A DNA stretch of 64,000 bases, taken from the NCBI GenBank assembly GCA_002104945.1, contig MCFH01000059.1, forward strand, positions 62,001-126,000. Direction: 5' to 3'. Shown here one piece after another: positions 1,661-47,802 of the stretch (its first letter is position 1; the number at the start of each line of letters is the position of its first letter). Position numbers and translations under genes: made by a program. This DNA is from Piromyces finnis finn (taxonomy: Eukaryota > Fungi > Neocallimastigomycota). A model generated the notes under the pieces. It was given only the letters and a program-made list of their open reading frames with translations, made no database searches and was not told the origin of the DNA.

Positions 1661-4600
1661 TTAATTCTTTGAAATTAAGGAATCAACCCATCCCATGATA
1701 TTATTTTGAATATCTTTCATATCATAAAGATGAAAAATTCTTAGTACAGCTTCCAATTCATTTAAATGATCCATTGTGTAATCAGTAAAGTTGTCTTGAA
1801 TGGAAGGACGATGTTGATAATCATCAACCAACTTCAGTGCTTGTATCCATTTCTCTGGAAGATTAGGATTAATACGTTGAATGGTATCATGAAGAGCTTC
1901 CATACGAATCTGATGATTTACTTTATGATTATTATTATGTAATATGTTAAGAATTGAAGATTCTGATGGTAACAATATACTTGCGGAAAAAGGATTAATT
2001 GTTTGATGAGGATTATCAGTAGTACTGGTGTTAAAGCTTTGCAAAGGATTAAGAGATGATGTTCTTACTGGGGGTACTTTTTTTGGATTATTTACATTCA
2101 TGGAAATATCAGAATTGTTTAATGATTTTTGAGAAGTTAAAGGTATAAAGTCATCATTGGGTTGGCGCTCATCTTGACATGAACTAGGTGTGGAAAGAAC
2201 ATTAATAAAATGACTTTTTTCTATTGAGTGCTCAACTGAAGCTGACTCAGAAGTTGAAATATTTTGTTGAGTAGATGCAATGTCTTGTAAACTATTACTT
2301 ATGGTACCTATCAAACCTCCTTGAGGTCTTTGTATACGATAAGAATTGGCATTCGTAGATACAAATTCACGAAGGACGACTTTACTGTTGGAAGAATTTA
2401 CAACAGATTTCATAGAAAGGGATGGTTTTGAGGAAAGCATGGAAACAAAAGAATATTCATGATGTAAATCATTCTTTTCATCATAAGAAGAGGAAGAAGA
2501 TGACATAGATGTCGCTATTGACAAAGGTCTCTTACCCTTCTGACCGACATTAATACTATAGGAATAAAAACTAGGACAATGATCTGATATATCAAAACCA
2601 GATATAACCTCGCTTGGAGTGCTATTAAGCCTATTTATGAAACCGAGTGAGGTATAATTAGTATTGTTATCAAAATCACTTTCAATTTCACCATTCGCTT
2701 CATCTATATCTTCATAGAGACTGATAGAATGACGACTAAGATATTGATGAAGTTTATCCTCAGAATCATTTCTAGACAAGGTACGATTTGGATATTGGCT
2801 ATACTTTGAAGATGCGACATTGATAGTATTAATAGATTGATTAGATCTTTTTAAACCACTGTATTCACTAGAAAGAGAAAGACTATCTTTAATTCTAAAT
2901 GAACGTCTTTCACTATACGAAGTATTAATCGATGTATTAATATCATCTTGATTTTTGTTATCATTATTATCATTATTGCCGTTATCAACCATTTGTATTA
3001 ATGCTGATGGAATTTCAATTCCTTTATCCTCTTTTTGTTTTTTAATCTGTTGATTTTGATTTGTCAATGAGGAATCTTCTGTGATCTTTGTAGTAATCTT
3101 TTCTAATTCTGTCAATTCAAGTGGTTCAACAGTTACTGCTTGTATAGGATTAACAGTTTCCATAGTTTTTTGTTTATCATTTTCTTTTTTAATTTTATAA
3201 GCGTTAATGTCATTTTGATTGGCGTTTCGAGGGTGATCACTATTCTTCTTCTTGAGGGTTTTAATGCCGTTCATCTCTTGCATGGTACTTTCATTGTTCG
3301 ATTCTATAGCTTCTGTGACTATTTCATTGGAATGAATAATGGGTGTAGTCTTTTCTGAGATCAAACCTTCTAAATTTGCACTAAAACCAACATAGCTATC
3401 TATGGGTCTTTTTTTATTGGTTGTAGGGGTAATTAAATCATCAGATTCAAATTCTGTTGATTTTACTTCAGATTCTAGTATAGGTGTCTTTTCATCATCA
3501 GTTTCTGAATCATTTAAGTTCTTACTTACTTCCACTATTGGTCTCTTTTGTTCATGAATTTCGAATGATGTAGATTGGTTAACCTTGATAGGATCATTAC
3601 TTTTTTGAAGATAAAAATTGACATTACTTTTATTAATCTTATTCTCAGAAAGGGAAGTAGACTGAGTAAATGAAGTAGAAATAGATTGCGAAAGTAAATC
3701 ATTAGTTTGATAAGAAACATTTTCTATTTCAAATTCATTTCCTTTTTGTAGTAAAGACGGATGAATATTTACAGAATTATCATTCTCAAAATCAGATTGA
3801 TCATCTATATCAATACAATGATTACTAATATCAAAACTATTCTGTTCATGAAGGAGATACATTGGTATTCCAATAGGATTATCACTTATACCTCCATAGG
3901 ATGATTCATAGGTTGAAATTGTTTTATTCATAGCAACATTCTTATTATAGAAAGGGTTGTTATAATACAAATTATTACTCATATTATGTGATTGATTAAG
4001 AGTACTAATGTTGATATATTTGCTTTCATTTGAATTACTTATATTATTTGTGTTATTATTGTTTATATTGCTAACACTGTTATTTTTATTAAGGGTAGAA
4101 TCATTTGAATCAATTTTACAGATATCAATATTACTTATTGCATTATCCGTAGATGGATCGCTTTGATATAGATGTTGTTTCATTAAACTAAGATTGAATT
4201 GTATAGAATCAGATTTATTTAATGGATTTTGACTGTTATCCATTTTTTCCGAATTTGTACAGTTAGCAACAAAAAATGAAGAAATATCCTTGCTTTTGTC
4301 AAAACTCGTTAAATGCATTTTTGAATCGGTGACGGAAATAACGATTGGAGCATAGAGACAAATTAAATATTTAATAATTTCAGTTTCACAATATTTCTTC
4401 ATACAATTCTCCACGACAAGACAACACATTAGCTCTAAAAGAGTATATTCATTATCAAAGAGTTCCTTATTAATGTCACTTTTAAAAATAGTCGGTCTTT
4501 TGTGTTTTGGAACAATATTTACACCCATATAAAGTGCAGTGAGACAAAGTTGTAAAGGATTCATTCGATGAACTAAATCGTAAGAATCAATTAATTCACT

Positions 4601-6661
4601 AACAATTACATCGTAATCTGGGTATATACTGGAGGCAAATTCTAGTAATTCAGCGATAAAATATGCTATTCTGCTCCAGAGATGAGGAGGGAAAATAAAA
4701 TATCGAAGAAGTATATTTATATGTTGTTCATCACTTTTTTCCATACAAATTCGTATTAGATTATATTGTATAAAATTATTATGAGAAGTCCAAGAACATG
4801 ATTTCAATTGAAATTTCAAAAGACGCTCGATTAAAAACTGATCCTGAGTACTGACCATTTGGGAAATTTCCTGTATACATTCTTCATATCCAGATTTTAA
4901 CCAATGATCTATGAATTCACCTAATTTCCAATTACCCATTCTATAAAATAAGATTTTTTTTTTTTTACAATTACATTAATAATATAATATAATAACAAAA
5001 TAACAATAATTAGTACATTAATAAAAAAAAAGTTATTTCAATATATAATAAAAGAAAAAAAAAAAAAGGGGGAATTTATGCATATAGTATAAAATATATA
5101 TTTTATATTTGAAAACATTCTTAAATAATACATAAGTAATAGTATAAAAAAATCAATGTAATCCTAATTACGTTTTGAATTTATGATTTTACCTTTGATG
5201 TTGTTCATTCAATGGGAAAATACTCCAAAAACATGCAACGTTATCAGCGAAATATTGAGAAACTTTTTTCACTACTGATTGAATGGTATCTAAAGATCTA
5301 TCAGGAAGACCACAATAAATACGAATTTCATCATCTTCGGGATAATCATCTGTTGTCATCGATGAATTAATTATAATTTTATTCTCGGAATCATTTATAA
5401 TATTTATGGTTTCAGTAGAAATAGGTGTAGATACTTTATCATATTCTGAATGTTCACTGATATTATCCAAGTTATTATTTATTGAATGGTTAGCTTGGAT
5501 AGGATAAATTTCATTTTCCTGAATATCTGAAGCATTAGATTCAGACAATAATTCTGGTATACTAGAGGTATTATTGGAAGTAGTATCTTGAAATATTTGT
5601 GGTTGAGAAGGTTTTTTGATGACGGAAGATAATTTGCTTTCTAAAGGATCATTAAAACTATTCTTAATTTTTTCTTTTTCATCATCCAAAGTGTTATTTT
5701 GATTTTTTGCTGAATCAAAATTAGTGATATGTTCTTTGGTAGTTACCGTTGAAGATGATAATGAATATTCTTCTAGTAAGGTTGGTAAAGAATTAGTAGG
5801 ATCAATATCCGAAGCTGCTGGTAATTCACTAATACTATCAAAAGAATATATCTTATTTTGATCGATATAGATGCCAGAAGGATCTGTAAGTTTAGTAGGA
5901 TTTAATGTGGGTTGAGTTTCTTCATTAATAGTATTAGTAGGTTGAAGATTGGCTGAATTGGCATTATTGGATATTTTACTATTAATACTATTATTATCTT
6001 GTTTTTCCTCTAATTTTACTGTCTCAGCTTTATCCGATAGTTTTGAAGATGGTACAATTTGGGTATCATTTTTTTGAACTGGTAAAGTTTCAGCTTCAAC
6101 AATTTCTACAGAAGAAAAAATTGGTTGTTTTCTTTTTTTAAAAATCTTTTTTATATTTAATTTTTGATAAATATGACTTTTTCTTGTTTTGCGTTTATCA
6201 CCTTTTTGTGACTTTTTCTGTTTGATTTCCAAAGATATTTTAGGTTTAATTTTATGTTCAGTTGTGATCTCAGATGATTTATCATCAGATTGTAAATCCA
6301 TAACAAAATTATCGGTAATTGGCCTTATGTTAGAAGCTTCTGAAAAATTATGATGAAACACTGAATTATTTTGAATAGTAATATGGCTGAGAGCATGACT
6401 GATAGTGCTTTGAGAATTTTTATGATTGATTTTATTTTTTGTTGATTTTAGTGATTTGCTATGTTTATGATACGATATATGAAATGGTTTCTTAAGCATG
6501 ACAATCAAAGAATTCATTAATGATTTATTGCTATCTCCATAAAATTGATTTACATTAATAATAGAATCAATAGTCTGATTTCCAATAATGCTTACATTCT
6601 GAATTTCATCTTCATTTTCTTTCTTTTCCTTTTTCTTATTTCTTTTTATTAAAGTATTCAT
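1661..6661 (-). CDS. Large orphan protein (~1,582 aa), two exons (6661-5193, 4940-1661); mostly Ser/Asn-rich disordered, with a central helical globular region
   Basis: The 490-aa and 1092-aa ORFs join in frame: donor CAAAG|gtaaaa (intron 5192-4941), acceptor tatag|A ATG GGT, giving ...HQ-R-MGNWK. Total 4,749 nt, divisible by 3. No family recognised. Confidence 0.8.
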
Positions 6662-14439: not shown

Positions 14440-15872
14440 TTATTTTTTAAATGATTTTTGTGATATTTTGGTATGATTATTATTTATTTTTTTATGAGAT
14501 GGATTAAGTTCTTTCATTGACACTCCAGTATTTTTTATTTGAAGATTGGTTTTTTTAGATGTCTTTTTTTGAGTATTGAGGATAGGTGTAGAACTAAATC
14601 CTTTCATATTATTAAGATCATTCGATTTGATATATTCTCCATCAGATAGTGTAACTTTTTTTGGTGATCCAGATTTAACTATTGTTGATTTGGCTTTTTT
14701 TAAATTTGATTTTTTCTTTATACTACTACTGTGACTACTACTACCACGACTATGATGTCTACTATTACTACTGTTAGTAGAAAGGGTTGCATAACTAGAT
14801 GCTTTAAGGTTACTCTTACTAATATCTTGTTCATGGTTCAAATTTGTTTCAGAAGCATAATCATCCTTTTTATTACTCTCTTCAAAATTATCATTTTCTT
14901 TTTCAATATTTCCCTTTTTTTCATCATTTAAAATTTCATTGAGTTTTTCTGATTTAATTTTAGATTCTTTCTCAGGAATATTAAAAGAAATTCTCATTTC
15001 CGAATCATGACCTTGAATTTCATTCTTTAAAGGAATACTACTATTTTTATTTGATGAACCCTTTTTCAAGATAACTTTTTTATCATTAGCAGAAATAGCC
15101 CTGGCTGTTTCTGGGGATACTATTACAATACTATCACTACTAAAACTTCCAATACCATTTTCACCCACTTCATAATATTTCAAAGAATGAACACTGTTTT
15201 GAACTCGTCCCTCCGTCTTTATTCCTCTTACATAATGATCTGATTGATATGTCACTCCTTCTTTTAACGTTATAGGACCATGACTTTTATCTAATTGGGT
15301 GGTTGAATAGCTGCACTTTTCACGACTTGTACAATCACATTCACATGTTGCGTGTGTAAGGGTATTATTAGTATTTCCATTAGCATCGTTATAACTATCT
15401 GTGGAAGAATTTATTTCTTTGTCAACTGTTTCTATTTTATCCTTTTTATCATTTTCCTTTTCCTTTTGGTTTTGTTGCTGCTCCTCCTTAATTTTTTTAA
15501 TCTTACCACAAACTAGACAATTATGACATTTAGGACATTTATAATGAATGCTGTTTTCAATAATTTCCTCTTCTTCATGCTTTTCCTTATTTTCCTTCAA
15601 TAATGCCCCATCACTACCAAATTTTCTTGTAATATGATCCACTCCATCTTGATCATTGTTTATTCCTTGAATATTATTTAAATCATATTGACTACTATTA
15701 TTACAAGATTGACTCTCATTATTATTATTATTATTATATGGAAAGTCGGTAGTTTGGATACTTTTATCCATGTGTTCCGGTACATCTTTTATTTCTTCTT
15801 CTGTTTGAGTTTGAGCAGTTTCTACTATCACTACACGATTAATTCTCATCTTTTCATCCCCTGTTGAAAATT
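14440..15872 (-). CDS. Low-complexity Lys/Ser-rich ORF with Cys clusters; probably the terminal exon of the 16776-19734 gene, possibly a separate gene
   Basis: 469-aa ORF with upstream acceptor tcaag|AA TTT TCA ACA GGG GAT GAA AAG ATG at 15872. Motifs HYKCPKCHNCLVCG and HATCECDC. I could not resolve the exon link across 15873-16650. Confidence 0.6.
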
Positions 15873-16775: not shown

Positions 16776-19734
<2,959 letters not shown>

Positions 19735-27521: not shown

Positions 27522-29981
27522 TTATTTTATATACAAAAAGGCTATAATTAGCACTATGCTGCCTATTGAATTTTTTTTATAATTATAATATTAGTATGGT
27601 GTAGAAATAATTTCGATATTTTTTAAAATAGAAACCATTTTATAACTTACTAACTACAATAAGCAATAAATTTTTATACGACTTTGGTTGATCCTTTGCT
27701 TTTTCTTCATTTTCGGAAAACTATTTAAAAAATAGGAGGGAGTAATGTTAAAATTAAAAAATTATAATTAGTTTGATAGAAATAAATATATCTATACAAT
27801 ATTTATTAACTAATGAATATTAAAAAAAACTTACAGTATTTATTAAAGATTTTAACAATTTTTTATCATTCTCTAAACGCATATGTAATAATCTAATTTC
27901 ATTTACATTAGAATCACTTGTTTGTTTCATGTTTTCAATTTTCTTTTGTAGGATAGTATTTTTTTCTTTAGTTGAATTTAAACTTTCTAGTAATTCCTTT
28001 TTTTTTATTTTTTTTTTAATAATTATATATGTATATATAAATTATTATTTATCCATTAGTATTCATTATTATATTACTTAAAGATCATATTTATAAATAA
28101 ATATTAATGAATTATTTCTACCAAATTTGTTGATGTTAAATTTTTAAACTTATCCAATACATCTTTTAATGTTTTTGTTTTTTCTTGAAGTTCAGTCTAT
28201 AATTATATTAATGTAAATATGAAAAAGAAATTACTATAACAATATGATGTAAATATAAATATTAAAGATGGTATGAAAGATATATACTTCTAATTCCAAT
28301 ACTGTATTATTATATTTATCAAATGTATTAAATATATATCTTATTATATTTTCTCCATTTCTTATATAATATTTTATTTCATTGTTTATAAATCATATAA
28401 ATTAATGAATATTGAAAATGAATATTAATTAAAATACTGTTTTCAATATTATATTATATTTATTCAAAGGAAGATAAATTACTCCTTATCTTTTTCTTTT
28501 TTCGACAATTCCATTTTTGGATTCCATTCATTATGCAACGTTTCTTTTAATATTAAGGTATGATTTATATTAATTATAAAATTAATTTTTTTTTTTTTAC
28601 TCAAAATTTATAAAATTTTTTTTTTCCGTAAAAATTTTACTTTGAATAACATTTTGCATTCTTCCAATGATTCTTATTATATTACATATTTCCATTTTTT
28701 TACTGCGAGTTGGGGCTTGTAATATATATACATTATCTCTTGTATTAAGTTGGAATACATTTGAATTACCTCTAAACATTGAACCTTTTGCGCAATAAGT
28801 ATTTTCTTTAGTGATATTTTTAAAAGGAAACAAATTAATGTATTATACATAAATAGTATATATCGTTATATTTATAAAAAGATGTATTATGTAAATATAC
28901 AACGATGTAAATATTTATACCAAATAATTTTTCAATATCCAAAACAATTAAATCATATGGTTTCCCCAAATTCTCTATCATCCATTTATTTTTATTTATA
29001 CTATCATTTGAATTAAGTAATGAAAAAGAACTACCCGATGATATATTTTCATTGCTAATCTCATTTGAAAGATTTTCAAATTCACTATCATCACTTGTTT
29101 TTTTTGAATGATCACTCTGAGTATAACTATATGTATCGGAATGTTCAGTCTTTATTGAATTTGGTGAACTTAGTCTATATGATGAATTGTCACTACTACT
29201 ATAATTATCATTTGGAGATGATGATTCGTTATTATTTTCTTTTTTATTCATTATATCCTTTGGTTTGAATGACTTTTCATTTAATACTTCTTCCGAAGAA
29301 TCATGATGGTCAATTAGGAATTTAACGGAACGTGTTTCTTTAAAAATAACTTTTAAAGCTTCTTCACCTATATCTAGAATTGATTTTTCTGGATCAAAAT
29401 AATATTTTGAATATTTCTCTTGATTTTCTTTCGGGGTAATAGCTAACTGAATAGTATCATCTGTTATTTTTAATATTGCAAAATCCTTGAATGAAAAGTT
29501 TTGATTTAAAATAGATACATAATATATATATTCCTTTAAATTTCCAATATCTTTTGAGGTATATTCCATATCAAAAAATGAAAATTCTTGATGTAAGGGA
29601 CTTTCATTCTCTGGAGAATTTTCATTTTCAAAAATAGGAGATGTATATTGATTAAATGCAGAATTGTTTATATTTGGTAATTCAACATCTTGAGAAGATA
29701 CTCCTAATAAATTATAATTTCCAAGTTTTTTTGATGATCCTATGGCATCATTTTTTAAGGTATTACTTATCTAAATGTAAGGTTTTTTTTTTAATTTCCA
29801 TTTCATTATTTTTTTATTTGTTTAATATTAAAATACCATAAATTTTACAATGTTATTTTCCATTATAAATCATTATAATAGAATGGAAAATAATAATTAG
29901 ATATATAAAGCATTATCTTTAAATATTTTTTGATTATTTATAATAAATTTAAATGATATAATATAATGATATCTATACCAT
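27522..29981 (-). CDS. Multi-exon protein with a split PH-like domain, coiled coil and C-terminal transmembrane (tail) anchor
   Basis: Large exon 29770-28921 includes the 244-aa ORF; next exon gives ENTYCAKGSMFRGNSNVFQLNTRDNVYILQAPTRSKKMEICNII (PH beta6-beta7-helix pattern). Last exons splice (GTT A|gtaagt...aatag|GC) to ...KSYKNLLLIVVSSIVLIIAFLYIK*. Start codon and one or two internal junctions are uncertain. Confidence 0.65.
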
Positions 29982-32769: not shown

Positions 32770-35700
32770 ATGTCGAATTCACCAATGCAATCGAGTAATA
32801 TGACTTCAGATGAAGTCTTTGATACCCAATCTATATCAACTCAAACTTTACCAGATACAATATTTCATTATCAATATTACAGTGAAAGAAGACATGAAAA
32901 TAATGGAAATTTATCAGAAAATAATGCAAAGAAAAATCAAGTAGAAGATTGGAGAATGCGTGAAAGATTGAAGACAGTATCAGTAGCGTTAGTATTATGT
33001 TTAAATATTGGTATTGATCCACCTGATATTGTTAAAACAAGTCCATGTGCAAAATTAGAATGTTGGGTTGATCCATTTGCATATCCACAACAAAAAGCAT
33101 TAGAAACTATAGGAAAATACTTACAACAACAATACGAAGTATGGCAACCAAGAGCTAGATATAAGTTATCACTTGATCCATCAGCAGAAGAAACAAAAAA
33201 ATTATGTTGTTCATTAAGAAGAAATGCTAAAGAAGAAAGAGTTCTCTTCCATTATAACGGTCATGGTGTCCCAAAACCAACACCAGGAGGTGAAATTTGG
33301 GTTTTCAACAAAAATTACACACAATATATTCCAGTATCTATACATGATATACAAACATGGCTCGGCTCTCCATCTATTTTTGTATATGATTGCTCAAACG
33401 CAGGAAATATTGTTAATGCATTCAATCGTTTTGCTAAGGAACGTGATAACGAAGCCAGACGTCAACTTCCAACCATTGATCCACAAACGGGTATGAAAAC
33501 TACACCAAGATTTTCTTCATTTAAAAACTGTATACAATTGGCTGCTTGTGGCAGCAATGAAATCTTACCTATGAATCCAGATTTACCAGCTGATATTTTC
33601 TCATGTTGTTTAACTACACCAATTCAAATTGCATTAAGATGGTTTGTTATGCAAAATCCATTACTTACACATATTACTCCAGAAATGATTAGTAAAATAC
33701 CTGGTCGTCTAAATGATAGACGTACACCATTAGGTGAACTTAATTGGATTTTCACAGCTATTACTGATACAATTGCATGGAATGTATTACCAAACGATCT
33801 CTTTAAACGTCTTTTCCGTCAAGATTTAATGGTAGCTGCATTATTCAGAAATTATCTTTTAGCAGAACGTATCATGAGATCATTTAATTGCCATCCAATG
33901 TCATCTCCCGTTCTTCCACCTACATATAAAAATTCATTATGGAAAGCATGGGACTTAGCTGCTGATATGTGCCTTTCTCAACTTCCAAATCTTCTTAGTA
34001 AACAAGGAGCTTGTGAAAATATTACTCAAGAATATAAGCATAGCACATTCTTCACCGAACAATTAACCGCCTTTGAAGTATGGCTTGCTAAGGGAGCAAT
34101 TTCTAAAGAACCACCAGAACAATTACCAATTGTTTTACAAGTTTTACTTAGTCAAGTTCACAGATTACGCGCTTTAATGTTACTTAGTCGTTTCCTCGAT
34201 CTTGGACCATGGGCTGTTAATGCTGCTCTTTCTGTTGGTATTTTCCCCTATGTTCTTAAACTTCTTCAAAGTCCAGCTGCAGAATTAAAACCAGTTTTAG
34301 TATTTATTTGGGCAAAAATTTTAGCTGTTGACCAAGGCTGTCAAAGTGATCTTTTAAAGGATTCTGGTTACAATTATTTCATTAGTATTCTTACTAATAA
34401 CAATGCACCACAAATACAAAATATTTCTGAACATCGTGCTATGTGTTGTTTCATTCTTTCAGTATTTTGTCATAACTTCCGTGAAGGTCAACAAGTATGT
34501 TTAAGATCCAATCTTTTAACAATTTGTATTCTCCACTTAAACGACCAAGATCCACTTCTTAGACAATGGGCTTGTATCTGTATTGGTAAGGTTTGGGAAA
34601 ATTATCCAGAAGCTAAAACCATCAGTATTAGAGATAATATTCATGAAAGACTTTTTGGTATATTAACTGATATTGTACCAGAAGTTCGTGCAGCAGCTAT
34701 GTATGCTCTTGGTACCTTTATTGGTAGTATTGAAAAAACTGAACAAGTCATTAGTATTGAACATAATTTAGCAATTTCAGTATTAGTTGCCACAGCAGAT
34801 GCTTCTCCATTAGTTCGTAGAGAGTTAGTTATTGCTTTATCCGCAATTGTTTATAACTATCACAGTAAATTTGTTCATGCAGCCAGTGAACTTATGGAAG
34901 AAGAAAGAAAGAGAATTTCAAATTCTGAAGATTTACACTACTATAACGCCAGTAGTTATATTAAAGGTAAGAATGGTGAAGACAATCCATCCTCATCTTC
35001 AAATGCTAATGCCTCACATTCAAGCCATAATACTATTTATAGTTGTGTATGGAAAGTCCTATTAAATCTATCTGTTGATCCTTATCCAGAAGTAGCTCAA
35101 TTAGCTAGTTGTGTTGTCGATGATGTTAATATGCATCTCCTTAATAATTCCGTCTCAGAAAATATTTCAAATCAATACCTTCAAAATAACCCTAATAATG
35201 CAGCAGGCGTAAATGATTTAGCAGCAAATCAAAATTCACAAGCCACCTCAAATTCAGCAACCATTACTACTACAACCACTACTACTTTTGCTCAATCAAG
35301 TGGTAATATTGTTAACACACTTCGTCGTTCACGTTCAATTGTAGATGTTCTCAAAAACTTTGCTAATCCATCATCAATGACACCTATCGAAGTTGTCAAT
35401 CCATCTTCATCATCTCAAAATAGAAATAGAAATTCTACAATTCTTTCTAATTCAATCAAAAATCGTTCATCATCATCAAGTTCTTTATCCCATCTTACTT
35501 CCCTTTCTCCTCTTACCTCAAAAAACGCTGATCAAAATAACTCGATAAATAAAAAGAGTCAAAGTTCTGTCTTTGATGCCAGTTTTAATATGTCTTCCAT
35601 AAAAAATTCTCTTCCAAAGAATGATGATGTGAATAATCGCAATACCAATAATAATAATACTAATAAATTAAATATGGATGACTCAAATACTAAAGCTGAA

Positions 35701-36021
35701 TCCATGATTCCATTAAAATCAGTATTCTTTTATTGGAGTTGTGAATACTTTACAGAATCACAAACTAAGGTATATACCTATAAAATGACAAAAGTTGATA
35801 CGATATATTTATAAAAAAAATATTAATTGGTTATTAAATAATTTTTTATCAATAGGTTCCAGAACCAGAAGATCCTGGAAGTATTAGATTTAATGAAAGA
35901 CAATATAAACATGAACGTTTAGAGAAACTTATTAATGATACCCATCCAAGATATGGATTAGCTTGTAAGTTTTTAATTTCTTATGATACCTTTTTTTTTT
36001 TTTCCCTATATTTTATACTGA

Positions 36022-45280: not shown

Positions 45281-45979
45281 ATGACAGTCGATACAAGTAA
45301 TTTAGACGTATTATTAAATAATGGGCAATTAAATGAATCTGAGCTTTATGAGAATAAGGGGAAAACATTGATATGTGAAATAATTAAAAATGGAAAAATA
45401 AATGAACTTGAAAATTTTATAAATAAATATAATGTTTCTTTACATAGTTATTCTAGTAATGGCTTTGATATATTAATATATACAATAAAAAATAGTGATT
45501 CAGTAGAAATGATAAATTTTATAATTGAAAAAACACCCTATAAAAATCTTAATTATACAGTAAAAGACAATAATAACACAATTGGTACACCTTTATTTCT
45601 TTCATTGGCTCAAAATAAATTTAAAATTGCGGATTTATTAATGGAAAATGGAGCAGATATAAATATGACATTGTGTTGTAATTTAGATAAAATTCGAGAA
45701 GAAGACGTTTACCTTACTCAAAATCCATATAAATATTATGATGTCATTGCCAATCGTGATTGTTTTACTCATGATTACTCCCGTGAAATTTATAGTAATA
45801 TAATTCAATATTTATGTGAGGTAGATTCACTTACTCAACAAAATTTAGAATATATAAAAAATCATGGCTTTGAAATTAACGCAATACGAACCGGAATTAT
45901 TAAGCAATTAGAAAGAAACAATAAATTTGAATATGCTAAAATGATTTCAAATTTAATTAGTGAACAAGATATTGATTAA
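45281..45979 (+). CDS. Ankyrin-repeat protein, intronless, 232 aa
   Basis: Ankyrin-like units FDILIYTIKNSDSVEMINFII and TPLFLSLAQNKFKIADLLMENGADIN. Confidence 0.85.
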   Translation: MTVDTSNLDVLLNNGQLNESELYENKGKTLICEIIKNGKINELENFINKYNVSLHSYSSNGFDILIYTIKNSDSVEMINFIIEKTPYKNLNYTVKDNNNTIGTPLFLSLAQNKFKIADLLMENGADINMTLCCNLDKIREEDVYLTQNPYKYYDVIANRDCFTHDYSREIYSNIIQYLCEVDSLTQQNLEYIKNHGFEINAIRTGIIKQLERNNKFEYAKMISNLISEQDID

Positions 45980-46758: not shown

Positions 46759-47802
46759 TTATTTTGTGACGTGATAACCTAATTCTTTTATCATTTGTAT
46801 ATCACGCTCAATTGTTATTCCTGATGTTGTTAACATATCTCCTGAAATTAAAGCATTTGCTCCAGATAATAAGCAACTACGTCCTTTATCACTCAATAAT
46901 CCACGACCACCGGCTAATCTAATAAAGACATTAGGATTTATAAAACGATAAATAGCACAGATTCTTCGCATTTCTTCTACACTAAGTACCTTATTATTCT
47001 CAAATGGTGTTCCTGGAATTGGATTAAGCATATTAATAGGAATAGATACTACTCCTAACTCATGAATCATGAAAGCCATATCAATACGATCTTCCCAAGA
47101 CTCACCGAGTCCCATAATACCACCAGAGCAAACTTCTAACCCTTGTTCCTTAGCATACTCAACCGTTTTAATTTTATCTTCTGTAGTATGCGTTGAACAT
47201 ACCTTTTTGAAAAAGTTTCTTGAACTTTCCATGTTATTGTGATAACGAGTTAAGCCTGCAGCTTTTAATTTCTTAAAATCACTTGAATTTAAAAGGCCGC
47301 AGGAAGCACATATCTTTAAATTTGTATTTTCTTTTATTTTCTTCATAGCTTGGCAAAGTTTTCCCACTTCAAACTTTCCAAGTCTACGACCTGAAGTGAC
47401 AGGTGCAAATCTTTGAACACCTCTGGAATCATCTTTTTTGGCTGCAGAGAGCATAGCTTCACTATCTACGAGTGGATATTTATTAACAGCCACTTTATAG
47501 TGTGAAGATTGGGCACAAAATTTACAATTTTCAGAACATTTTCCACTTTTAGCATTTATAATTGTACAAATTTCAAATTCATTTCCACAAAACTTTTGTC
47601 TTATTTCATTTGCCGCTTTACATAACTCTTCAAGATCACTATTAACTAATTTCATAGCTTTACTTTTCGTTATTTCCTGACCATTAATAATATTTTGTTT
47701 CAATTGATTAATAAAAAACTTATTTACCGCTGAACATAATGTTCTTTGAGATATATGATTTAATAATGGATAACAAAATTGAACAGGAATATTTCTAATC
47801 AT
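46759..47802 (-). CDS. bioB: Biotin synthase (radical SAM), intronless, Firmicutes-like, with an N-terminal extension
   Basis: CTIINAKSGKCSENCKFCAQSSHY (CxxxCxxC), YHNNMESS, EVCSGGIMGLGE, IPINMLNPIPGTP, IRLAGGR, and a C-terminal SGANALISGDMLTTSG segment. Confidence 0.97.
   Translation of the reverse strand: MIRNIPVQFCYPLLNHISQRTLCSAVNKFFINQLKQNIINGQEITKSKAMKLVNSDLEELCKAANEIRQKFCGNEFEICTIINAKSGKCSENCKFCAQSSHYKVAVNKYPLVDSEAMLSAAKKDDSRGVQRFAPVTSGRRLGKFEVGKLCQAMKKIKENTNLKICASCGLLNSSDFKKLKAAGLTRYHNNMESSRNFFKKVCSTHTTEDKIKTVEYAKEQGLEVCSGGIMGLGESWEDRIDMAFMIHELGVVSIPINMLNPIPGTPFENNKVLSVEEMRRICAIYRFINPNVFIRLAGGRGLLSDKGRSCLLSGANALISGDMLTTSGITIERDIQMIKELGYHVTK

Follow-up and report, generated by a model that had tools for sequence, protein, structure and literature searches.

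An open reading frame of the anaerobic fungus Piromyces finnis raised the question of which kind of biotin synthase (BioB) is used by a strictly anaerobic eukaryote, and from where it was obtained. Type II BioB was described in 2024 and was reported from anaerobic prokaryotes only, with eukaryotes encoding Type I BioB only (Lachowicz et al. 2024, PMC10813225). A reading of the locus made from the DNA alone (the sequence-only reading) had proposed that the Type II kind occurs here in a eukaryote and came from bacteria, and ligands, marker residues, fold and tree were all found to be of Type II. Its statement that no eukaryotic example had been described agreed with the literature: the searches found no publication on Type II BioB in eukaryotes or gut fungi, be it on its nature or on its origin, and PMC10813225 calls eukaryotes exclusively Type I. 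The reading favoured below, a Type II-clade BioB that originated in an alphaproteobacterial lineage and works as the biotin synthase of the fungus, is given a probability of about 0.7.

The gene and its place in the fungal genome

The window, i.e., the whole stretch of DNA analysed, comprised 64,000 nucleotides of contig MCFH01000059.1 in a host assembly of 56.46 Mb and 232 contigs. The complete coding sequence of the Type II-clade BioB was located at positions 46759..47802 of the minus strand and specifies 347 amino acids plus stop, beginning with ATG. The frame was single, uninterrupted and intact, with an in-frame stop nine codons 5' of M1 and the next Met at M50. Since the protein could be aligned with bacterial BioBs from end to end, with no intron-like gaps, the gene is intronless, as had been proposed. 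The whole protein matched the NCBIfam model TIGR00433 (bioB) with 396.1 bits (cut-off 225), versus at most 86 bits for the HydE, PylB and HmdB models, and Pfam assigned a Radical_SAM (PF04055) and a BATS (PF06968) domain. This was the only BioB among the BioB matches in the genome; the other two radical-SAM matches were HydG and HydE themselves, and identity of the gene as a HydE or HydG paralogue was rejected. Proteins of gut fungi have already been deposited under the name "biotin synthase".

Being intronless and of bacterial type, the gene might be taken for an assembly artefact, in which fungal DNA was fused to a read or contig from contaminating bacteria. This explanation has next to no probability in view of the surroundings and the distribution of the gene. 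The GC3 of the coding sequence was 0.18, as in the host, versus 0.46 in the bacterial sister genes, and both flanks had 18% GC and no N runs. The same window carried eukaryotic genes, namely a Raptor_N/HEAT gene (32770-35814), a GMP-PDE-delta gene and an ankyrin gene. Remnants of bioD, bioA, rnd and efp, which accompany the gene in bacteria, were sought around the locus, with chance-level matches only. Orthologues with the same extra N-terminus were present in three other fungal assemblies and on many metagenome contigs; the contigs that carry those of Anaeromyces robustus and Neocallimastix lanati measure 420 kb and 1.38 Mb. Because the gene is common to at least three genera of gut fungi, it was acquired before their divergence. 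Compared with the closest fungal orthologue, dN/dS was 0.076, a sign of strong purifying selection, and the base composition of the gene has become entirely that of the fungus. Residence of a Type II-clade BioB of bacterial origin in the nuclear genome of the fungus is thus close to certain.

Cluster ligands, marker residues and fold

All residues listed by the sequence-only reading were found, and all positions given here refer to the minus strand of the window. The radical-SAM motif CxxxCxxC (Cys89, Cys93 and Cys96; 47515..47538), which binds the SAM-associated 4Fe-4S cluster, was invariant across 230 aligned BioB rows. Ten residues ahead of this motif lies Cys79 (47566..47568), which corresponds to Ser43 of the E. 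coli enzyme and, when aligned with the Type II enzyme of Blautia obeum (boBioB), paired with the ligand Cys52; by this alignment it is the Type II-specific ligand of the auxiliary cluster. The further auxiliary-cluster ligands of boBioB, Cys138 and Cys198, have their counterparts in Cys165 (47302..47310, together with Ser167) and Cys225 (47128..47130), and the stacking Arg268 of boBioB (Arg260 in E. coli) in Arg295 (46918..46920). In the alignment to 8vcw, the spacing of residues 79, 165, 225 and 295 (86/60/70) was identical to that of residues 52, 138, 198 and 268 of boBioB; distances of 86 and 60 had been given by the sequence-only reading, and they match the boBioB numbering in PMC10813225.

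Two marker residues of the active site pointed in the same direction. His161 and Ser140 are conserved to 99-100% in Type II enzymes, and Type I enzymes have Asn and Thr instead (PMC10813225). The equivalents in P. finnis BioB are the active-site His188 (47239..47241) and Ser167, where Type I has Asn151 and Thr130. At the columns of Cys79, Ser167 and His188, all 206 rows on the Type II side of the 230-row alignment had Cys, Ser and His, and all 24 rows on the Type I side had Ser, Thr and Asn. The sacrificial 2Fe-2S cluster of Type I is held by Cys97, Cys128, Cys188 and Arg260, and of these ligands Cys97 is missing from P. finnis BioB, its place being taken by Ala133 (47404..47406).

The same position, 106 in boBioB, carries the Ser that named Type II, and this Ser is not present in P. 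finnis BioB either. In the structures it is no cluster ligand; for motif types other than Ser the coordination of the auxiliary cluster was not determined, and the 'Type A' motif was said to be confined to Bacteria (PMC10813225). By that motif scheme, P. finnis BioB is classed from its sequence as 'Type A', though it is nested in a clade of the Ser type. Ser occupied the position in 197 of the 206 Type II-side rows and in four other fungal orthologues, and Ala was found in P. finnis BioB, in P0001 and in five further rows scattered over the clade. Judged by this distribution, Ala133 is a late, lineage-specific change from Ser. The sequence-only reading was right about the residue at the Cys97 position, but Ala does not go back to the transfer, since the orthologues of the other genera of gut fungi keep the usual Ser. 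Judged from the sequence, with the three Cys ligands and Arg in place, a 4Fe-5S auxiliary cluster chemistry is probable for P. finnis BioB.

Structural comparison led to the same assignment. The closest solved structures were those of the Type II enzymes of Veillonella parvula (vpBioB, PDB 8VDW) and Blautia obeum (PDB 8VCW), with E-values of about 2e-84, versus 4e-48 for E. coli BioB (1R30). An AF2 model of P. finnis BioB (pLDDT 87.5) was superimposed on 8vdw and 8vcw with TM scores of 0.86-0.87 at 42-43% identity, and on 1r30 with 0.81 at 29%. With boBioB and vpBioB it has in common the fold, the radical-SAM motif, the three Cys ligands, the Arg, the equivalents of Ser140 and His161, the lack of Cys97, and a strictly anaerobic host. 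Unlike these enzymes, to which its identity is only as high as stated, it has a eukaryotic host, Ala at position 106 and an N-terminal extension of 28 residues, and it is the only biotin-pathway enzyme found in its genome. With Type I enzymes, i.e., E. coli BioB and fungal mitochondrial Bio2, it shares the reaction (dethiobiotin to biotin) and the general fold, whereas identity was 29-31% and the branch between the two types was very long, the longest in the tree.

Relatives, donor and direction of transfer

The careful tree was calculated with IQ-TREE under LG+C20 PMSF. It contained neither the crystallised boBioB and vpBioB nor fungal Type I Bio2; the lineages of the former were represented by BioBs of a Blautia MAG and a Megamonas (Selenomonadaceae) MAG. 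In this tree P. finnis BioB grouped on the Type II side, apart from Type I. The fungal BioBs were monophyletic (support 100/99) and formed a clade (100/91) with 22 rumen alphaproteobacterial rows, and the next sisters of this clade had gene contexts of proteobacterial type. The taxonomy of the MAGs follows the labels of their submitters, and the intermediate lineages (P0037-P0043, P0040, P0047) are metagenome contigs.

Gut Firmicutes had been named as the donor by the sequence-only reading, and this part of it was contradicted. Direct acquisition from clostridia would agree with the occurrence of Type II BioB, which is typical of Clostridia and Lachnospiraceae, and most of the several thousand BioB matches were indeed from Firmicutes, at 53-62% identity. 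MAGs of rumen Alphaproteobacteria, however, reached 74-79% and formed the sister group of the fungi. When the fungi were constrained to the Firmicutes side, the log likelihood fell by 115 units and the AU test rejected the tree with p = 1.3e-5 (46 rows, LG+F+G4, best of four -fast searches per hypothesis). Derived motifs of the fungal BioBs, namely Pro after the Ser/Ala, C-A-S-C-G, Y-H-N-N and E-S-W-E-D, were shared with the alphaproteobacterial group only. Direct transfer from Firmicutes is therefore highly improbable, although the alphaproteobacterial and fungal clade lies inside Type II diversity, so that the ultimate source may be Firmicutes-like.

The closest relatives belonged to one subclade of small-genome rumen Alphaproteobacteria. 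Their BioBs (RGIG8297, contig JAGABS010000018.1; RUG13554; P0019 and P0025) resembled the fungal ones over the whole mature protein, and differed from them by the lack of an N-terminal extension, by a GC3 of about 46% and by Ser at the 106-equivalent position throughout. The contig of RGIG8297 was a genuine bacterial one with 42% GC and carried efp, rnd, bioB, bioD, bioA, potF, pssA and psd. In the alphaproteobacterial contigs examined, bioB was followed by bioD or by bioD and bioA, apart from one (L099, genome G052) with a methylase-like gene 3' of bioB in their place. The order efp-rnd-bioB recurred in other assemblies, and an rnd-like neighbour was present in 55 of the 58 genomes of this alphaproteobacterial order. 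Most genomes of the order carried a different, Type I-like BioB with 34-38% identity, so that the Type II gene is foreign to it; the genomes with Type II were each other's nearest kin.

Monophyly of the alphaproteobacterial MAGs (93/83) placed the fungi as sister to the sampled crown group, not nested within it. In the same comparison of 46 rows with -fast searches, exclusion of the fungi from the wider alphaproteobacterial clade was rejected by the AU test (p = 0.027) but not by the SH test (0.079). Since fungi and crown group are reciprocally monophyletic, topology alone gives no direction. A reverse or relayed transfer, in which an unsampled bacterium gave the gene to the fungi and these later passed it on to the rumen crown group, would be compatible with this topology and with the fact that Type II bioB was itself acquired from outside by the order. 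It is nevertheless very unlikely: the bacterial genes are devoid of the fungal N-terminal extension, and overlapping bioB-bioD(-bioA) genes are common to the crown group and the more basal P0039 and P0040. Distant members of the order (G050 and G057) moreover hold more divergent copies, which diverge in step with a housekeeping gene next to them, the pattern that vertical inheritance in bacteria would produce. An alphaproteobacterial lineage is thus the likely donor. The gene would have passed in a single transfer from bacterium to fungus, bioB alone, from this lineage or from a close unsampled relative.

N-terminal extension, biotin pathway and meaning for gut fungi

Codons 1-28 (47719..47802, minus strand) form an N-terminal extension that was absent from all bacterial relatives. 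In P. finnis it contains three basic and no acidic residues and a conserved R-T-(I/L) motif, and residues 1-17 were disordered in the predicted structure. Extensions of 27-37 amino acids were present in all six fungal orthologues, and all six were devoid of Asp and Glu, versus 11% in the mature part. A conserved Arg is located two to three residues ahead of a Ser-rich stretch. Because there is no Met at the position of the bacterial start, the extension is obligatory. An origin from DNA upstream of bioB in the bacterial genomes G052 and G055 was considered and rejected; the similarity was a read-through over a stop codon, and the bacterial genes start at the usual Met.

Presequences for import into the mitochondrial matrix comprise the N-terminal 15-50 residues, are basic and free of acidic residues, and have Arg at position -2 or -3 of the cleavage site. 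Yeast Bio2 is imported into mitochondria, the organelle in which Fe-S clusters are assembled. Composition and R-T-(I/L) motif fit the presequence pattern in each of the six orthologues, and the extension is probably a hydrogenosomal presequence of mitochondrial type. A hydrogenosomal location of P. finnis BioB is accordingly somewhat favoured on these features; the acid-free, basic extension would route the enzyme into a compartment that is anoxic and holds Fe-S assembly machinery.

The genome was searched for further biotin genes with six-frame profiles, which may miss intron-rich genes in a genome of 18% GC. These searches found no second BioB and no canonical Type I BIO2, a check that the sequence-only reading had proposed. 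The proposal that an ancestral Bio2 was replaced by the Type II enzyme may hold; what the search showed is the absence of Bio2 in P. finnis, not its ancestral presence. BioA was not found by the six-frame profiles; a candidate on another contig (C1) turned out to be ArgD. Two independent profiles, both of which detected BioD in most control genomes, gave no BioD in P. finnis. No plausible BioF was found, its matches being below the cut-off and inside giant or unrelated ORFs. The genome did contain BioY and a biotin carboxylase of the acetyl-CoA carboxylase type. With BioY present, and BioA, BioD, a plausible BioF and a second BioB lacking, the enzyme is probably supplied with dethiobiotin that the fungus salvages from other members of the rumen community. 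This salvage is judged somewhat more probable than its opposite, and a 'BioB-only' salvage variant is known from gut bacteria (PMC6593275).

According to an alternative interpretation, the extension is no import signal and the enzyme is cytosolic, or biotin is formed de novo via unrecognised upstream enzymes. Growth of N. lanati in the absence of added biotin has been reported despite gaps in its modelled pathway (PMC8561657); this may point to upstream steps that escaped recognition instead of salvage. The P. finnis genome has giant ORFs with KAPA-synthase-like aminotransferase domains. Against this stand the obligatory nature of the extension, its freedom from acidic residues in all six orthologues, the conserved Arg before the Ser-rich stretch, and the failure of both profiles to detect BioD. 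This alternative is considered unlikely.

Hydrogenosomal location and salvage would together give the following scheme, which is put forward tentatively, at slightly less than even odds: gut fungi would import an oxygen-labile, bacterial Type II 4Fe-5S BioB into their hydrogenosomes as the only enzyme of the biotin pathway and, with a BioY-type carrier, would convert dethiobiotin of the rumen into biotin. SAM-derived 5'-deoxyadenosyl radicals would abstract hydrogen from dethiobiotin, and the extra sulfide of the auxiliary 4Fe-5S cluster would be inserted into it.

The BioB family of the Neocallimastigomycota is a clear exception to the report that eukaryotes encode only Type I. If the scheme is true, Type II BioB would be seen here for the first time in a eukaryote and in an organelle. 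The expected donor is corrected from Firmicutes to rumen Alphaproteobacteria; the Proteobacteria in the data set of PMC10813225 had Type I BioB only, and some Proteobacteria are now seen to carry Type II. Under the scheme, gut Alphaproteobacteria, besides Firmicutes, would hold and donate this enzyme. The sporadic change from Ser to Ala provides a natural experiment on the residue that defined the type, and this residue would be dispensable.

NadA/NadB and AdcA of the Neocallimastigomycota follow the same pattern, in which a bacterial enzyme compatible with anaerobic life was fixed in the ancestor of gut fungi (PMC8262920; 10.1101/487215); the main text and one supplementary file of the survey of horizontal gene transfer (10.1101/487215) do not list biotin synthase among the transfers in cofactor metabolism. 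This gene adds biotin to the parts of cofactor metabolism that gut fungi have rebuilt with oxygen-independent enzymes from bacteria. The result also bears on the 'incomplete' biotin pathway in metabolic models of gut fungi and on the vitamers that cultures really need. A hydrogenosome with its small and known Fe-S machinery may ease the question of the source of the sulfide that the 4Fe-5S cluster inserts, and would offer a eukaryotic setting with defined ISC machinery in which the donor of the fifth sulfide can be sought.

A biotin synthase of the Type II clade

The biotin synthase (BioB) gene was an uninterrupted open reading frame of 347 codons on the minus strand (window 46759-47802), with an in-frame stop 9 codons before the first Met; the next Met was residue 50. 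Radical_SAM and BATS domains were detected in the 347-aa protein with Pfam, and the NCBIfam BioB equivalog TIGR00433 scored 396 bits (cut-off 225). The paralogous models HmdB, PylB and HydE reached at most 86 bits. All residues named in the sequence-only reading (Cys89/93/96, Cys79, Ala133, Cys165, Cys225 and Arg295) were found in place.

By sequence, the closest solved relatives were the Type II structures 8vdw (V. parvula) and 8vcw (B. obeum), both at E ~2e-84, as compared to 4e-48 for E. coli BioB (1r30). An AlphaFold2 model (mean pLDDT 87.5) gave the same ranking by fold, with TM 0.86-0.87 and 42-43% identity to 8vdw/8vcw and TM 0.81 and 29% identity to 1r30. In boBioB, the auxiliary 4Fe-5S site is formed by Cys52, Cys138 and Cys198 with Arg268 stacked above, and E. 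coli Cys97 is replaced by Ser106; the Type II markers His161 and Ser140 are 99-100% conserved and correspond to Asn and Thr in Type I (PMC10813225). In an ungapped alignment, the ligands and arginine matched fungal Cys79, Cys165, Cys225 and Arg295, and Ser106, His161 and Ser140 matched Ala133, His188 and Ser167. The spacing of 86/60/70 was identical in both enzymes, so the ligand spacing given in the sequence-only reading was correct. Among 230 aligned BioBs, columns 79/167/188 were Cys/Ser/His in all 206 Type II-side sequences and Ser/Thr/Asn in all 24 of the Type I side. The column of E. coli Arg260, a 2Fe-2S ligand, held Lys in 22 of these 24 rows (rows L103-L125), all native BioBs of a small-genome alphaproteobacterial order; either a genuine substitution or an alignment shift by one column could account for this.

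BioB types are named after the residue at the Cys97 position (PMC10813225); the fungal protein, with Ala133, therefore bears the 'Type A' motif, which according to the same study is confined to Bacteria. The strict Type II motif has Ser at this position and is not matched by the fungal protein. Ala was shared with the closest orthologue (P0001, 89% identical), and the canonical Ser was present in the orthologues of Anaeromyces robustus and Neocallimastix lanati and in two more fungal sequences. Among Type II-side sequences, this position was Ser in 197 rows, Ala in 7 and Gly in 2, the Ala rows being spread over several lineages. Judged from these alignments, Ala is a recent change. Since Ser has no ligand role in Type II structures, and Ala is scattered and recent, the fungal protein is interpreted as a member of the Type II clade that tolerates a Ser-to-Ala exchange, rather than as a kind of its own.

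Gut-fungal proteins labelled 'biotin synthase' were already present in public databases. In the literature searched, no Type II BioB was found described for gut fungi or any other eukaryote. In the study by which Type II was defined (PMC10813225), plants and fungi are reported to encode Type I only, as are the Proteobacteria of its data set. Biotin was not mentioned in the main texts of two papers on horizontal transfer in gut fungi, nor in one preprint supplement.

Genomic residence and probable donor lineage

The bioB gene is a fungal gene. GC content was about 18% across the whole window, and the bioB flanks were 18% GC and free of N. The window also contained eukaryote-specific genes, namely a GMP-PDE-delta-like gene, a Raptor_N/HEAT protein gene (32770-35814) and an ankyrin-repeat gene adjoining bioB (45281-45979). 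Orthologues were situated on fungal contigs 420 kb and 1.38 Mb in length. GC3 of the fungal coding sequence was 0.18 versus 0.46 in the closest bacterial genes, and no relics of bacterial neighbour genes were detectable around fungal bioB. Comparison to P0001 (dS 0.79, dN/dS 0.076) indicates strong purifying selection.

The ankyrin-repeat gene also adjoined bioB, in a different relative orientation, on metagenome contigs with the 89%-identical orthologue (L131, 475-1869). For five long intron-free ORFs of 244-1092 aa (window 1661-4939, 5189-6661, 14440-15849, 18124-19734 and 28835-29569, all minus), no match was obtained in Pfam at E <= 1e-5; the first two were situated in GC-richer stretches (27-31% versus a background of ~17%).

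After the fungal orthologues, the best matches were about 40 proteins of ~318 aa with 74-79% identity, whose named members were 'MAG: Alphaproteobacteria bacterium'. BioBs of Firmicutes, Brachyspira and Melainabacteria followed at 53-62%. Among GTDB species representatives, two rumen MAGs gave close matches: RUG13554 and, from water buffalo, RGIG8297. The contig of RGIG8297 is clearly that of a bacterium, with dense coding and 42% GC. It carried efp, an RNase-D-like gene, bioB, bioD, bioA, potF, pssA and psd; the order efp-rnd-bioB recurred in independent assemblies. RUG13554 had an intact bioB on contig C96 and a second Type II copy (L096/L097, G002:C20:8830-9784) in which residues 30-297 and 295-347 lie in different frames, owing either to frameshift in a pseudogene or to faulty assembly.

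The order of RGIG8297 comprised 58 species-level genomes of 0.5-2.2 Mb. Fungal-like Type II BioB (62-77% identity) was encoded in 7 of these and Type I-like BioB (34-38%) in about 28, with both in one. Most of the order had the Type I-like form only; the Type II gene must therefore be an acquisition made within the order. The rumen alphaproteobacterium G052 carried a Type II gene (locus L099, 73-76% identical to the fungal one) and a Type I-like gene (35%) on one contig (C18:111096-112127 and C18:16933-17880). The RNase-D-like gene was found in 55/58 genomes. By this gene the Type II-bearing genomes were mutually nearest kin (79-100% identity), and two genomes more distant by it (G050, G057) also had more divergent BioBs; this agreement fits vertical inheritance of Type II bioB within one alphaproteobacterial subclade.

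The main tree was calculated with IQ-TREE (87 rows, LG+C20+F+G4 PMSF). Fungal BioBs were monophyletic (100/99) and formed a clade with 22 alphaproteobacterial rows (100/91). These rows were monophyletic (93/83), making fungi and alphaproteobacteria sister groups. Successive outgroups were P0037-P0043 (metagenome contigs), the G050 group, the search matches P0047/66/72 and P0040, and then Melainabacteria, Brachyspira and Firmicutes; Type I BioBs were on a very long branch. Two intermediate lineages had proteobacterial-style contexts (sspB ... dnaK-dnaJ-bioB-bioD-bioA and bioB-bioD-tal-miaB-ybeY-corC) and shared an overlapping bioB-bioD junction.

In AU tests (46 rows, -fast searches, LG+F+G4), exclusion of the fungi from the alphaproteobacterial clade was rejected (delta lnL 46, p = 0.027). 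Placement on the Firmicutes side was strongly rejected (delta lnL 115, p = 1.3e-5), and the Firmicutes donor proposed at first was abandoned, as was also indicated by the identities. From the sequence data, a single transfer of bioB is concluded, by which the ancestor of the gut-fungal genera sampled received the gene from this rumen alphaproteobacterial lineage or from an unsampled bacterium closely related to it. The sister-group topology alone would be compatible with transfer from fungi to alphaproteobacteria, but this direction is unlikely given the conserved bioB-bioD operon junction and the congruence of BioB with a housekeeping neighbour gene in the bacteria.

Pathway context and predicted localization

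When the whole assembly (56,455,805 bases, 232 contigs) was searched in six frames with profiles, a single BioB was detected; two further weak matches were HydG and HydE. In the same searches BioD was not found with TIGR00347 or PF13500, nor was BioA, the best BioA-like match being ArgD. BioF-like domains were sub-threshold only, within giant or unrelated ORFs. KAPA-synthase-like aminotransferase domains of this family were located at C112:705872-706588, C35:238648-240175 and C113:691398-692255 of the fungal assembly (G000), in frames of 2029-3600 aa that are probably PKS/NRPS-type megasynthases. A BioY domain (133 bits) and a biotin carboxylase of the acetyl-CoA-carboxylase type were present. 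This gene set matches the 'BioB-only' variant of gut bacteria, read as dethiobiotin salvage by Rodionov and co-workers (PMC6593275). It also fits N. lanati, whose biotin pathway has been described as 'incomplete', although this fungus nevertheless grew without added biotin (PMC8561657).

All six fungal BioBs started 27-37 residues ahead of the bacterial start. The extension lacked Asp and Glu in all six (mature part 10-12% acidic), contained 3-7 Lys/Arg, and had a conserved R-T-(I/L) ahead of a Ser-rich stretch. Residues 1-17 were predicted to be disordered in the AlphaFold2 model. The fungal protein has no Met at the bacterial start position, and the extension therefore cannot be skipped. An acid-free, basic N-terminus with Arg at -2 or -3 is a hallmark of mitochondrial-type presequences. 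Together with the mitochondrial location of yeast Bio2, which is matured by the ISC system (PMC6006210), these features make targeting of the fungal BioB to the hydrogenosome the most probable interpretation.

No new mechanism is implied by the fungal Type II-clade BioB. It represents a known kind of enzyme in a host where it was not expected; the proposed donor has been corrected, and an address in an organelle is plausible.
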